A stretch of DNA of 64,000 nucleotides, taken from positions 1 through 64,000 of the IMG/VR virus record IMGVR_UViG_3300032268_000832; one strand, 5' to 3'. The stretch's first letter is position 1. Every line of letters starts with the position of its first letter. The position numbers and the translations under genes are program-made. The notes below the pieces were generated by a model. That model saw nothing but the letters and a program-made list of their open reading frames with translations, was not told where the DNA came from and did no database searches. Shown here piece after piece: positions 2,964 through 58,489 of this stretch.

Positions 2964-3257
2964 ATGAAAAATAAAGAATTTGGGTTAGTATTAGATTTAA
3001 CTTGGTTAGAAACCAATGAAAGTGTGTTTGCAATATTGGAACGATTTGCAATTAATTTTTATCGTTTTGTTAATAACAAACACGAAATTAAATTAAATGA
3101 CGATAAAGATAAATTATGCGAGTTTCTTAAATCAAATAATATTGATTTCACTTGTGAAGTTAGCAGAGCAGATGAAAAAGATTTTTGGGTTTCATTTGAA
3201 TTAAAAGCTGATACCTATTTAGACGTTACAGACCGAATTGAATTAAGAGCAAGATAA
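2964..3257 (+). CDS. hypothetical early protein (97 aa)
   Basis: Preceded by ATTAAATTTAATAACTTATG leader. Confidence 0.75.
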   Translation: MKNKEFGLVLDLTWLETNESVFAILERFAINFYRFVNNKHEIKLNDDKDKLCEFLKSNNIDFTCEVSRADEKDFWVSFELKADTYLDVTDRIELRAR

Positions 3258-30358: not shown

Positions 30359-30520
30359 ATGGCTCGTTACGCATTAAAAACTAAAAATGGTGAAGTTATT
30401 AACACAATTAACGCTGATAACCAAACAACAGCAGCAGAATTATTTGCTGAAATTAAAAAAATTAACACTGAAGATTTGTTAAATATCTATGATGTTGATA
30501 TTTTTATTGGGGTAAAATAG
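30359..30520 (+). CDS. small hypothetical protein (53 aa)
   Basis: Hand-translated MARYALKTKNGEVIN... Confidence 0.6.
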   Translation: MARYALKTKNGEVINTINADNQTTAAELFAEIKKINTEDLLNIYDVDIFIGVK

Positions 30521-30581
30521 TTTTTTTTTATTTTTTGATATATTTATTAGTAAATAAGATTTTATTTTAAACCAAATAGAC

Positions 30582-30785
30582 ATGTCAAACACTAAAAAAA
30601 CTGTTAAAATCAAAGAATCTCACCTTGTTGATTTAATCGACAACATTGTTAATGAAGCTGTTGCTGTAAAAAAACAAGAGTGGATTAATGAACAAGCTAA
30701 AAAACAAAGTGAATCAAGCAAATTAATGGAAGCAAAAATTGCTAAATTAGAAAAAGCTGTTAGAAGACTTACTGAAGGTAGATAA
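30582..30785 (+). CDS. small putative head-associated protein (67 aa)
   Basis: Late promoter at 30540; IKE/VNE/LME/LTE sites; terminator 30813-30840. Confidence 0.7.
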   Translation: MSNTKKTVKIKESHLVDLIDNIVNEAVAVKKQEWINEQAKKQSESSKLMEAKIAKLEKAVRRLTEGR

Positions 30786-30883
30786 TTAAAAACTATCTAA
30801 ATTAAAAAAAATAAGACTGGAACATATATGTTCTGGTCTTTTGTTTTTTATACTTATTGATATATTTATCTTAAAAAGGTTTT

Positions 30884-31573
30884 ATGCAAAAAGTTATCGA
30901 AAAAATGGTAAAAACTCAAACACCATTAACATCATGTGTAATAAGAGATGAATATATTTCAGCTAGTGAAATTGCTTTTGATTGTATTTTTGATGGTACT
31001 TCAAAATTTTATCCATGGGAATTACCTAAATCATTACCAAAAGAATTTAAAATAGGTGTTATCGTTGGGTCTAGCGGTAGTGGTAAATCAACTATGTTAA
31101 AACATTTTGGTTTAGAGCAATCACCAGAATGGAATCCAGAAAAATCAATCATATCACATTTTGATTCACCAGAAGACGGTATAAAAAAACTAAGTTCAGT
31201 TGGTCTTAATTCTGTACCTTCATGGTATAAACCTTATCATGTTTTATCCAACGGTGAAAAGTTTAGAGCTGATTTAGCTAGAAAAATAAAATCTAATTCT
31301 GTAATTGATGAATACACTAGTGTTGTTGACAGAAATGTTGCTAAGGCTGCTAGCGTATCTTTATCTAGATATGTTAAGGATAATGGTATCCAGAATGTTG
31401 TATTGTCAACGTGTCATAGGGATATATTAGAATGGCTTGAACCTGATTGGGTGATTGATACAGATAGTGGTGAGCTAATCGACGGTTTTTTTTTGCCCGA
31501 CCAGAAATCAAACTTGACGTATATCGCGCAAACAATGATAGTTGGAGAATGTTTAGCGACCATCACTATTTAG
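30884..31573 (+). CDS. ABC-type ATPase (N-terminal part of probable ATPase-GNAT fusion)
   Basis: GSSGSGKST, LSNGE, VIDEY, STCH. Confidence 0.85.
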   Translation: MQKVIEKMVKTQTPLTSCVIRDEYISASEIAFDCIFDGTSKFYPWELPKSLPKEFKIGVIVGSSGSGKSTMLKHFGLEQSPEWNPEKSIISHFDSPEDGIKKLSSVGLNSVPSWYKPYHVLSNGEKFRADLARKIKSNSVIDEYTSVVDRNVAKAASVSLSRYVKDNGIQNVVLSTCHRDILEWLEPDWVIDTDSGELIDGFFLPDQKSNLTYIAQTMIVGECLATITI

Positions 31574-31968
31574 ATTCTAAAGTAAATAAAGCCGCTAGGT
31601 TTTATGTTGGAATCTGGGATGGAAATGTTGTTGCTTTTGGCGCGGCCATAACTATGCCTAGTGGTACAATTAAAAACGCGTGGAGGGGTCATAGAACGGT
31701 TGTGTTGCCAGATTTTCAAGGGATGGGTATAGGTGTTCGTTTTTCAGATATAATAGCGCAAATCCACTTAAATGAAGGTCATAGATATTTTTCTAGAACT
31801 GCGCACCCGCGCATGGGAGAATATAGGGAGAAATCACAGCTATGGAAACCTACCAGCAAGAACAAAAAATTAAGAACCGATGTTAAACATGAGAACGTGT
31901 ATAACAATCATTTTGCGGATAATAGACGAGTTTGTTATAGTCACGAATATATTGGTTTAAAAACCTAA
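31486..31968 (+). CDS. GNAT acetyltransferase (-1 frame continuation of the ATPase; ATG at 31549)
   Basis: RTVVLPDFQGMGIG acetyl-CoA motif; frame open from 31474 through the T9 run. Confidence 0.8.
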   Translation, partial: FFFARPEIKLDVYRANNDSWRMFSDHHYLDSKVNKAARFYVGIWDGNVVAFGAAITMPSGTIKNAWRGHRTVVLPDFQGMGIGVRFSDIIAQIHLNEGHRYFSRTAHPRMGEYREKSQLWKPTSKNKKLRTDVKHENVYNNHFADNRRVCYSHEYIGLKT

Positions 31969-41381: not shown

Positions 41382-42494
41382 ATGGACAAAAATTTTAAAA
41401 TTAATCCAATAGGTCTTAAAGGTAACGAAATTAACGAACGTATGAGACAACTTATGGGTGTTACACCTATTAACGAGGGTTTATCTCGCTCAACAGTTGA
41501 GTTAACAAAACTTGGACCAGATGGTAAGTCATACGGTATTGTTAGAGAAAATCACGAATATTATATCAAAGTATCTGATAAAACTTCAAATTTAACTGTT
41601 GAAGATTTTAAGTATATTGGTGGTTTACAAAATAAAAAACAAGAAGCTTACCCATCATACGCTAAAGCTACTAAACATTTAAACTTAAGATTTAACTCTA
41701 TTTGTGAGTCTTACGATATTGTTAATACATTTAATGTATTTGTTGATGATAAATTATTATCAGAAGGTGTAGCTAAAGAAGCTACAAAACACATTACAGA
41801 TACCAAAGGTAAAGACTTAGACGCTAAGGCTAAAGAAGAAGGTGGTGATAATTTGGCTGGTAAAAAAGTTATGGATGAAATGGAAGAAGTAACACTTACT
41901 GAAGATGAGTTAGCTATTGATGCAATGCTTAATGAAATGGAAGAATTAGATGAAGAAGAATCTAAAGACAACCCATGGGCTATTTGTACTGCTAGTGTTG
42001 GTCGTAAAGACAAAGAAAAATACGAAGCGTGTGTTAGAGACGTTAAAAAAGAAAAAGGTATCAAAGAAGAATTAAAAGGTAACCAATCAAAAATCGATGC
42101 CAATAAAAACGGTAAAATTGATGGTGAGGATTTTAAAATACTTAAAAAAGGTAAAGTTAAAGAAAATTTTGGTGTAGAACCAGAACAAGAACCAACAACT
42201 GATGAGTTAATGGATAGATTAGATAATATGTCAGCAGCTGAATTTATTGAATTATTAGGTGATGCTGGTAAAGATGTTATGAGATTTGCTAAAAGAAAAA
42301 TTGAAGCTGGGACTAAATTTATGTTAAATAAAATGGGTCACGAAGTTGATGAAGCTAAAGATTTCCCTGATTTAACAGGTGATGGTAAAGTAACTAGAGC
42401 TGATATTTTAAAAGGTAGAGGTGTTGATTTAGATGAAGAAATGACTATTGAGGAAATTCAAGAAGCTATTGCTGATTTAAAAAAAAAACTTTAA
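41382..42494 (+). CDS. acidic head-core protein with two EF-hand-like loops
   Basis: IDANKNGKIDGED, PDLTGDGKVTRAD; many L/I-x-E sites. Confidence 0.8.
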   Translation: MDKNFKINPIGLKGNEINERMRQLMGVTPINEGLSRSTVELTKLGPDGKSYGIVRENHEYYIKVSDKTSNLTVEDFKYIGGLQNKKQEAYPSYAKATKHLNLRFNSICESYDIVNTFNVFVDDKLLSEGVAKEATKHITDTKGKDLDAKAKEEGGDNLAGKKVMDEMEEVTLTEDELAIDAMLNEMEELDEEESKDNPWAICTASVGRKDKEKYEACVRDVKKEKGIKEELKGNQSKIDANKNGKIDGEDFKILKKGKVKENFGVEPEQEPTTDELMDRLDNMSAAEFIELLGDAGKDVMRFAKRKIEAGTKFMLNKMGHEVDEAKDFPDLTGDGKVTRADILKGRGVDLDEEMTIEEIQEAIADLKKKL

Positions 42495-53048: not shown

Positions 53049-53534
53049 ATGAAATCAGGTAAACAAATTAAAGTCCAAGACCAACAAAATTATAACATAA
53101 CTTACGGTTGTGTAGATAATAAAAACCCTAAATCAATATATGTAAATATTACAGCGTGGTTAGAACCATTATCAGAAAACGAAGAAGATTATAATAAGAT
53201 TATAAAAAATCTTAATAAAAAAATTAGACAAAACCTTTATAATTTTTTATCTTCAGATAAATCAACAATTTTTTTAAAAGATAAGACTATTGTTGATTTA
53301 GATTTAAGAGAATCTGGTATTAAATTTGGGAAGAGGAGTTTCATGAGTTGTGAAATAACTTTATTTCAAAATGGTGAAATTTCCATAAATTCAGAATTAA
53401 TGAAACAAAATTTAAACAACGTTTCTTCTTTAATAATAGATAGAACATTTAATGAAGATAAGGACTTTAGATTCCATAAAAAAAAAATAATCAAATTTAA
53501 ACCCAGCAGTTGCTGGGTTTTTTTATTTAATTAA
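53049..53534 (+). CDS. hypothetical protein (C-terminus uncertain at A10 run)
   Basis: Host-type promoter at ~53027; ORF reads into the terminator at 53499-53520. Confidence 0.7.
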   Translation: MKSGKQIKVQDQQNYNITYGCVDNKNPKSIYVNITAWLEPLSENEEDYNKIIKNLNKKIRQNLYNFLSSDKSTIFLKDKTIVDLDLRESGIKFGKRSFMSCEITLFQNGEISINSELMKQNLNNVSSLIIDRTFNEDKDFRFHKKKIIKFKPSSCWVFLFN

Positions 53535-57564: not shown

Positions 57565-57672
57565 TTATGATAATTTATTAATTTCAGCTCGTATAGCAGT
57601 GCCTAATAATGTATCATTTGGTGTTGATTTAACCAGTTCAATAATTTTTTCTAAAAGTTCTTTATTTTCCAT
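57565..57672 (-). CDS. small protein (35 aa, MENKELLEKIIELVKSTPNDTLLGTAIRAEINKLS)
   Basis: Hand-translated; own TTTG-N20-TAtcTTTG promoter on the - strand. Confidence 0.6.
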   Translation of the reverse strand: MENKELLEKIIELVKSTPNDTLLGTAIRAEINKLS

Positions 57673-57727
57673 ATTTTTTTTTTACAAAGATACTAATTTT
57701 TTTATTAATTTGCAAATATTTATAAGT

Positions 57728-58489
57728 ATGAAAAAATTAATAAAAAAGTTAATTAGAGAAAGTTTAGAAGACATCGCTGGTTTTACAAACATAACACCAG
57801 AGGAACGCAAAGAAATCGATAGAAGATATAAAGAGTTTGTTTTATCTGATACTGAAAGCGCTGTTAAAGCTAAAAAACAACTTGACCATTACAATAAGGT
57901 AATAAGCGACCCAAAATTTGCCAACCAAGAATGGATTCCAAAAGCTTTTAAAGACCAAATTAGTGCATTACAAAATACAATTAATGCTGCTAAAAATAGA
58001 GATAGAAAAGCTGTGTATCATGAAATAGCTAGAAATTATTTATCATGGAAAAGATATGAAGATGATATAGTTAAAGCTAGAGAGTCTAGAACCTTTGGTA
58101 AAGAAGACATTATAAACCTATTTGTAGACGCTTTAGAAGGAGGTTCTAACTATTGGTATGAGATACGTCATTTACCTAACGAAGTTCGCTATAAAGCCAA
58201 GGAAATGGGTCAATCAGTATCTGAAGCTATAGGTGAGTATATTCTTAAAGGTGGTTATGTTCAATTTTATGATGCTGAAGAAGAATATGACGAAGATGAT
58301 TATACTGAAACACATTCAGATAATGGATTGTTGGGTACAGTAGATATGGATTCAATTCTAGAAGCAATAACAATAATAAAAAGAGATTACCCAGATGTTT
58401 GGGAAAATATACTTGATGAGCAATACGATGCAAACGATGCTGATATATTTTTACAATTATGCGTTATGGGTGATGTAGTATTTGGTTAA
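57728..58489 (+). CDS. putative internal head protein (MKKLIKKLIRE; start corrected)
   Basis: Late promoter at 57716; C-terminal ALEGGSNYW...DADIFLQLCVMGDVVFG domain. Confidence 0.8.
   Translation: MKKLIKKLIRESLEDIAGFTNITPEERKEIDRRYKEFVLSDTESAVKAKKQLDHYNKVISDPKFANQEWIPKAFKDQISALQNTINAAKNRDRKAVYHEIARNYLSWKRYEDDIVKARESRTFGKEDIINLFVDALEGGSNYWYEIRHLPNEVRYKAKEMGQSVSEAIGEYILKGGYVQFYDAEEEYDEDDYTETHSDNGLLGTVDMDSILEAITIIKRDYPDVWENILDEQYDANDADIFLQLCVMGDVVFG

Follow-up and report, generated by a model that had tools for sequence, protein, structure and literature searches.

A conserved T9 site at which a predicted -1 shift would join an ATPase and an acetyltransferase in a jumbo phage gene

The sequence examined here, called the window, is the first 64 kb of a 306-kb IMG/VR virus record with about 30% G+C. 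It belongs to a tailed phage, as PHROG profiles identified a large terminase, a portal, and an HK97-type major head protein, the last being closest to those of T4-like phages of Microcystis and Flavobacterium and of an uncultured 484-kb phage. Within the window lies an open reading frame (ORF) for an ABC-type ATPase that is broken at a run of nine T's, past which the -1 frame encodes a GNAT acetyltransferase domain. The features of the locus are collected in Table 1. The terminator-like hairpin that ends the upstream gene, together with the repeated motif that follows it, suggests that the ATPase/GNAT gene is its own transcription unit; the motif, a possible phage promoter element by inference, had 5 matches at up to 1 mismatch against 0.9 expected, and 1 of 100 shuffles reached 5. 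The genes next to the locus (LRR protein, RNase H-like, DUF5661, ClpB-like) gave no functional link.

Table 1. Features of the ATPase/GNAT locus, in window coordinates
Position	Strand	Feature	Details
30813-30840	+	Intrinsic-terminator-like hairpin	12-bp stem plus T tail; ends the upstream gene
30857-30869	+	Repeated upstream motif	TTGATATATTTAT; an exact copy lies at 30535-30547, before the gene at 30582
30884-31573	+	0-frame ORF, 229 aa (predicted short isoform)	Complete ABC-type nucleotide-binding domain, then a 26-residue tail encoded in the overlap; Walker A GSSGSGKS, residues 62-69; signature LSNGE, 121-125; Walker B VIDE, 140-143; H-loop H178
31471-31473	+	TGA in the -1 frame	Upstream limit of the region in which a shift can occur; same frame as ATG 31549
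31474-31968	+	Open -1 frame	Reads ANRRFFFARPEIKLDVYRANNDSWRMFSDHHYL... from 31474; stop at 31966-31968
31484-31486	+	GGT codon of the 0 frame	Followed by TTT TTT TTG
31486-31494	+	T9 run, the recoding site	In-phase X_XXY_YYZ heptamer T_TTT_TTT, 31486-31492; second overlapping heptamer T_TTT_TTG, 31489-31495
31492-31968	+	-1 frame coding region	Interdomain linker plus GNAT domain with acetyl-CoA motif FQGMGIG; after a -1 shift the product would be a fusion of about 360 aa (...ELIDGFFFARPEIK...)
31493-31573	+	Dual-coding overlap	0-frame tail and N terminus of the -1 frame GNAT; zone of suppressed synonymous variation
31499-31547	+	Candidate stimulatory stem-loop	5' arm 31499-31510 (RPEI codons), 3' arm 31536-31547 (DSW codons); in this window 4 bp, a 2x2 internal loop, 4 bp
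31549-31551	+	Internal ATG in the -1 frame	Likely GNAT start for an annotator; not a conserved start
31571-31573	+	0-frame stop TAG	26 codons past the heptamer; a by-product of the conserved HHYL codons of the -1 frame

The original prediction placed a candidate -1 frameshift at this T run, with an in-phase heptamer just after a -1 frame TGA, a -1 frame that reads into a GNAT domain, and a 0 frame that runs on for about 25 codons, and this observation proved correct in every detail. The -1 frame reads FFFARPEIKLDVYRANNDSWRMFSDHHYL and continues into the GNAT domain, which Pfam recognized above its cutoff (Acetyltransf_1, 23.6 bits against 20.7). The 0-frame product fell just under the cutoff of the ABC_tran model (24.3 bits against 25), which 57 of 58 relatives match. 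A single PHROG profile, phrog_11143 (357 positions; a phage ABC-GNAT fusion of unknown function), matched the 0-frame product at positions 35 to 194 (E, 9e-62) and the -1 frame product at positions 199 to 351 (E, 3e-43), so the break sits exactly at the T run. In the whole window, only four homopolymers of 9 or more lie inside ORFs of 100 aa or more, and the other three sit at ORF ends.

An alignment of 58 natural in-frame relatives showed both domains intact. The ATPase motifs GSSGSGKS, LSNGE, VIDE, and H178 were invariant or nearly so in two of our alignments (A1 and A3), and the FQGMGIG motif of the GNAT was invariant at Q278, G279, G281, and G283 of A1. An AlphaFold model of a native in-frame fusion (locus L059 of our set; pLDDT 88.4, pTM 0.80) placed the residues corresponding to the T run in an unstructured linker at 200 to 210, between the last strand of the ATPase and the first strand of the GNAT. 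PDB profile searches and Foldseek returned ordinary ABC nucleotide-binding domains (WzmWzt, MalK, and others with Foldseek) and ordinary GNATs, and no solved protein with this architecture; all NCBIfam hits were far below their cutoffs. A model of the short isoform, built from a shallow alignment, was poor (pLDDT 58, tail below 50) and gives no support for a structured role of the 0-frame tail.

We next asked whether the split is conserved. A word search, which returned roughly 7,500 relatives, found the window's own 229-aa protein on four contigs, and more than 100 protein clusters at 75 to 91% identity also had exactly 229 aa. Of 81 related viral loci, 67 keep the ATPase in frame 0 and the GNAT in frame -1, down to about 60% identity, and GGT TTT TTT TTG is unchanged in nearly all of these while neighboring third codon positions vary freely. 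The upstream -1 frame stop lies as close as 3 nt to the heptamer in many loci, and the 0-frame stop lies 28 codons after GGT in 66 of 67. A virtual -1 fusion (...G FFF A/V R P...) aligned without any gap to natural in-frame fusions, which include the T10 variants L056 and L059, nested inside the clade, and the distant relatives L069 to L080, whose linker has no slippery sequence. Homopolymers are error prone and T10 variants that give one ORF do exist (L056, L059/L062), so a sequencing or assembly error was considered. However, exact-pattern scans of IMG/VR for the run with its conserved flank gave 68 independent contigs with T9, from many samples, one with T10, and none with T8. Nonhomopolymer variants and finished isolate genomes show the same split, and synonymous suppression of the overlap (see below) would not arise from an error, which makes this explanation very unlikely.

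The T10 count bears on one of two outcomes that had been named beforehand as refuting a frameshift; the other was translation of the GNAT from ATG 31549 alone. In favor of two separate proteins, with the GNAT starting on its own or by coupling at the ATPase stop, an ATG lies in the -1 frame just before the 0-frame stop, annotators list two genes, and in Oenococcus and Lactococcus phages the annotated downstream ORF overlaps the ATPase stop by 4 nt. However, the Met of ATG 31549 is also present in in-frame relatives, and it is L, V, or I in three split loci (L038, L040, and L051). The 18 codons between the T run and the ATG show the codon-position pattern of the -1 frame, are conserved as protein, and align with in-frame relatives; in the structural model they form the first strand and the start of the first helix of the GNAT fold, which a product starting at that Met would lack. 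Decay to a pseudogene is argued against by the retention of all catalytic motifs in both halves across the clade. Independent initiation and decay are both considered unlikely.

The slippery sequence itself differs among relatives. Within the clade, L064 to L068 keep the split but carry GGA AAT TTT (A_AAU_UUU), and L029 has T8 followed by C; both preserve an in-phase heptamer. Outside the clade, a nucleotide search of isolated phages gave only short ATPase matches to Streptococcus phages, but protein-level searches revealed isolated Firmicutes phages with the same -1 split at the same linker: Streptococcus and Lactococcus P335 phages have CAG GTT TTT C (G_GTT_TTT), Oenococcus has ACA AAG G, Enterococcus phage 9184 has GCA AAA AAG (the classic A_AAA_AAG), and Thomasclavelia has CTG GGG GAG. 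In Escherichia coli, H_HH.U_UU.Y and V_VV.A_AA.R are the most efficient -1 heptamer classes (PMC4066793), and U_UUU_UUU, A_AAU_UUU, and A_AAA_AAG all belong to them. Many other isolated phages carry plain in-frame fusions, among them Aeromonas PX29, Vibrio VmeM-32, Nonlabens P12024S, Gordonia phages, and Burkholderia phiE255. A maximum-likelihood tree placed the jumbo-phage clade (55 rows, support 96; 49 T9, 3 AAATTTT, 1 T8, and 2 nested T10) apart from the Streptococcus/Lactococcus/Oenococcus split clade (support 100), each among in-frame relatives. The split therefore arose at least twice, and the two T10 in-frame forms are separate reversions.

To look for additional constraint on the overlap, codon differences between sequence pairs sharing an amino acid were compared with the rate for that amino acid elsewhere in the gene. 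Synonymous variation in the -1 frame fell to 0.37 of expectation over residues 202 to 229, exactly the 28-codon overlap, against 0.87 to 1.11 in all 267 other 28-codon windows. Third positions of the -1 frame are second positions of the 0 frame, so this is what selection on a translated 0-frame tail would produce, although an RNA element would also contribute. In 62 in-frame relatives the same codons showed a milder dip of 0.71, and an unexplained part of the constraint is therefore independent of the overlap. The tail is well conserved (consensus GFFLsdQkS.skYIaQ.mivGeCLKTItI).

Consensus folding of the whole split clade with RNAalifold gave no convincing structure (-0.7 kcal/mol), but a helix appeared when loci were folded singly and grouped by slippery-site type. 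All four distinct split loci that lack T9 (L029, L064, L066, and L067) have a perfect 11- to 12-bp helix starting 6 nt after the heptamer, with z-scores of -4.3 to -5.9. Three different arm sequences occur among them, which shows compensatory change, and the arms lie in the R-P-x-I codons and in the codons around the conserved Trp. When the same 12 positions were counted in every sequence, 11 to 12 paired in non-T9 split loci, 7.8 on average in T9 loci (mean longest run, 4.3), and 6.0 on average in in-frame relatives. On the alignment, 67.5% of cells paired against 19 to 43% for slid controls, with five pairs changed on both sides; 18 of 500 shuffles reached the covariation score, so this support is modest. 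The Streptococcus phages have an analogous CCCCAC/GUGGGG stem at the same 6-nt spacing. In the window itself, only 8 of 12 positions pair and the folding z-score is near 0. An upstream GGTGA lies 11 nt before the heptamer, but it is also the conserved Gly-Glu codons, and no SD-like stimulator could be separated from protein constraint.

These results bear on whether slippage is by the ribosome or by RNA polymerase, which could stutter on the nine A's of the template and add one U. Polymerase slippage as the sole or main route at this locus is possible, although we regard it as the less likely alternative. In its favor, the run is T9, not just a heptamer, and is fixed at nine, and T9 loci have lost, or never had, the strong hairpin carried by every heptamer-only locus (11 or more pairs in 4 of 4 against 1 of 49), which fits a route that needs no RNA stimulator. 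U7 is underrepresented in all three frames in E. coli genes, which the authors of that study link to transcriptional slippage (PMC4066793). An unstimulated U_UUU_UUU may shift ribosomes at only a low rate. Against it, sister lineages use A_AAU_UUU with only 4 to 5 T's, and unrelated phages use A_AAA_AAG or G_GUU_UUU, which are too short for polymerase slippage and are in phase for ribosomal slippage. The two extra T's can also be explained by dual coding, since they encode Phe in the -1 frame and Leu in the 0 frame, and one locus, L057, combines T9 with an 11-bp hairpin.

Taken together, our preferred reading, to which we assign a probability of about 0.85, is that this is one gene with a programmed -1 recoding site in the linker between its two domains. 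In this view, ribosomes that read straight through the run would release the 229-aa ATPase, while a fraction that slip back one base, or that read an mRNA carrying one extra U, would continue into the GNAT domain to give a fusion colinear with the in-frame enzymes of related phages. The inference of the original prediction, that frameshifting or slippage yields an ATPase alone plus an ATPase-acetyltransferase fusion, is strongly supported on comparative grounds. What the analysis establishes is the site, its conservation, its replacement by other slippery heptamers, the colinearity with in-frame fusions, and the extra constraint on the overlap, whereas the production of both proteins, their ratio, and the dimer described below are inferred from sequence and models alone. 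At the level of the family, in-phase heptamers of several kinds, a hairpin at the right spacing in non-T9 members, and colinearity fit ribosomal -1 frameshifting. For the T9 lineages, which include this window, the long run coincides with a weak hairpin, which fits either a more slippery ribosomal site or polymerase slippage; we put about half the weight on the former and somewhat less than half on the latter, and both may operate. Either way, the predicted outcome is two isoforms.

Because the isoforms share the nucleotide-binding domain, they would be able to form the usual ATP-sandwich ABC dimer, either as homodimers or as a heterodimer carrying a single acetyltransferase, with the slip rate setting the ratio. 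A complex prediction placed the long isoform with the ATPase-only part and two ATP in the canonical head-to-tail arrangement, with Walker A residues 61 to 68 against signature residues 121 to 124 in trans. The score was 0.84 against a best control of 0.23, a mark reached by 58 of 80 solved complexes and 2 of 110 mismatched pairs; the runs agreed in at least 95% of contacts, and the partner's pLDDT was at least 88. However, this prediction used our own alignment, the sequence of the relative L059 rather than that of the window, and a riding ligand, and it may reflect memory of solved ABC dimers, so it supports binding but does not show it.

The function of the enzyme is likewise a prediction. 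[quoted passage not shown] In the Firmicutes phages the gene sits between a ParB_N-domain gene and an ASCH-domain gene, just before the terminase. ASCH proteins include N4-acetylcytidine amidohydrolases and proposed tRNA ac4C erasers (PMC6972931; bioRxiv 10.64898/2026.02.27.708502), which makes cytosine N4-acylation of a nucleic acid an attractive guess, but one that rests on gene neighborhood alone, and the 306-kb record of the jumbo phage has no ASCH gene. A more speculative and, on present evidence, unlikely proposal is that the frameshift is a repeatedly evolved stoichiometry device for an asymmetric enzyme, in which an ABC dimer carrying one acetyltransferase would use ATP to write an N-acyl mark on phage nucleic acid, with N4-acetylcytosine the most specific candidate. 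Under this proposal, one clade would also have traded a classic heptamer plus hairpin (ribosomal) for a bare T9 run (polymerase slippage), a natural example of one route to a trans-frame product being replaced by the other.

Programmed -1 frameshifting and transcriptional slippage are established phenomena, and in phages programmed frameshifts are known mainly from tail chaperones and a few structural genes. No description of either in this gene family was found in a recoding review (PMC5009743), the GeneTack survey (PMC3711429), the heptamer study (PMC4066793), the PRFect paper (PMC10885494), or a full-text search for frameshifting in phage ABC ATPase-GNAT genes, a survey that did not extend to Iyer 2013 and Krishnan 2020. 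What is unusual here is that the site lies in a predicted DNA-modifying enzyme, that the split has arisen repeatedly at one domain junction, and that run length compensates for hairpin strength. It is fixed across a large clade of uncultured jumbo phages and recurs at the same junction in Streptococcus, Lactococcus, Oenococcus, Enterococcus, and Thomasclavelia phages. Current annotations split or mislabel this gene as "ABC transporter" plus "hypothetical protein," and the full-length enzyme will be missed unless the shift is modeled; anyone expressing it to find its product must supply the fusion, and perhaps both isoforms. The clade also offers a natural series for studying how slippery-run length and stimulatory structure compensate for each other (T9 with a weak helix, T8 or A_AAU_UUU with an 11- to 12-bp helix, and T10 in frame), and cultured hosts exist for the Firmicutes versions, so both the recoding and the chemistry are open to direct test.

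The closest described protein is the ABC ATPase-coupled GNAT of phages predicted to acylate a DNA base (Iyer et al. 2013, as cited in PMC7824862), exemplified by Tenacibaculum phage pT24. It has the same two-domain architecture, belongs to the same family (42% identity to the window protein in both halves by tblastn), and is found in T4-like jumbo phages, but its description in that review treats the gene as a simple fusion and mentions no frameshift. The original prediction called such fusions Mom-like, which is imprecise. Phage Mu Mom is also a GNAT-superfamily enzyme that modifies phage DNA bases, but it has no ABC ATPase, and the review lists the ABC-coupled GNAT as a separate family; Pfam scans at E up to 1 returned only the generic models Acetyltransf_1 and Acetyltransf_7, from a library that may or may not hold a Mom-specific model. 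TmcA and NAT10, ATP-dependent N4-acetylcytidine writers, are alike in outline, coupling an NTPase module to a GNAT acting on a nucleic-acid base, although the ATPase here is an ABC-type domain, not a helicase-type one. Among recoding sites, Shigella mxiE (T9; mentioned in PMC5009743) and Thermus dnaX (A9) are transcriptional slippage sites in which, as would be the case here, one extra base at a homopolymer of nine joins two frames into a longer product, but loci related to ours achieve the same split with short heteropolymeric heptamers that polymerases do not slip on. The E. coli dnaX tau/gamma frameshift (A_AAA_AAG, upstream SD, downstream hairpin) likewise gives two isoforms of a P-loop ATPase that share the ATPase module and assemble together, with a hairpin about 6 nt after the heptamer as in the non-T9 members, and Enterococcus phage 9184 uses the very same heptamer; in dnaX, however, the shifted product is the shorter one, whereas here it would be the longer one. 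Finally, the G/GT-type frameshift of phage tail assembly chaperones is also a conserved -1 shift that gives a short product and a C-terminally extended fusion, at a conserved position where the slippery sequence differs between lineages. The gene here encodes an enzyme with two catalytic domains rather than a structural chaperone, the shift sits exactly at a domain linker, and close and distant relatives exist as plain in-frame fusions.

An A10 run sits at the very end of a 370-amino-acid (aa) ORF (…GAT TTA AAA AAA AAA CTT TAA), where it is in phase as A_AAA_AAA, and the -1 frame is open from the run into the next ORF, of 507 aa. This is probably the site that the original prediction had listed as its first candidate -1 frameshift. 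Two more long homopolymers lie inside ORFs of the window, an A10 run near the end of one ORF and a T10 run near the start of another, which has a GTG start, whereas most other runs of 8 or more in the window are intergenic. Upstream of two consecutive start codons, at a distance of 15 to 35 nt, lies the exact repeat TTGATATATTTAT, following a strong terminator. The repeat may be a phage promoter element, and the genes concerned have no clear Shine-Dalgarno sequence. Also in the window, the phage encodes a full-length double AAA+ chaperone of the ClpB/ClpC type, with Clp_N, AAA, AAA_2, and ClpB_D2-small domains.

Positions of the features (window coordinates, except for the last row)
Feature	Position	Strand
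Repeat TTGATATATTTAT, exact copies	30535-30547 and 30857-30869	
Position listed along with the repeat	30495-30507	
Strong terminator	30813-30840	
ClpB/ClpC-type chaperone, 833 aa	33069-35570	-
ORF of 370 aa	41382-42494	
A10 run at the end of the 370-aa ORF	42479-42488	
ORF of 507 aa	42521-44044	
ORF with A10 near its end	53049-53534	
A10 run	53478-53487	
ORF with T10 near its start (GTG start)	57599-58489	
T10 run	57674-57683	
In-frame TGA in Tenacibaculum phage pT24 (LC168164.1)	about 3069-3073 of that record	

Relatives of the ATPase-GNAT gene that have no frameshift (the in-frame loci L069 to L080 and L085 to L164) also showed reduced synonymous variation over the linker and the GNAT N terminus, in the codons equivalent to window residues 195 to 230. 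The value there was 0.71 of expectation, against 0.86 to 1.06 elsewhere, a reduction for which we have no explanation. In two of the loci that carry A_AAT_TTT (L067 and L068), the 0-frame ORF extends far upstream, reaching 589 codons, and the virtual fusion is 722 aa, so that the ATPase may be fused to a further N-terminal domain.

The homologue from Tenacibaculum phage pT24 is in frame across the ATPase-GNAT junction but has an in-frame TGA inside the GNAT domain, and the record accordingly annotates two "ABC transporter ATP-binding" coding sequences. This could reflect an error, a mutation, or readthrough. In the Streptococcus and Oenococcus phages (L082 and L165 to L168), the gene belongs to a conserved triad located just upstream of the terminase, consisting of a ParB_N-domain protein annotated as "DNA modification methylase," the ABC ATPase/GNAT, and an ASCH-domain protein, with the ParB_N gene overlapping the ATPase start by about 22 nt. 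In Enterococcus phage 9184 and Thomasclavelia phage TR-TP1, the -1 frame product is longer, giving virtual fusions of 480 and 465 aa, respectively, and in phage 9184 it is annotated as "DNA polymerase." Both of these genes lie among replication genes rather than next to the terminase.
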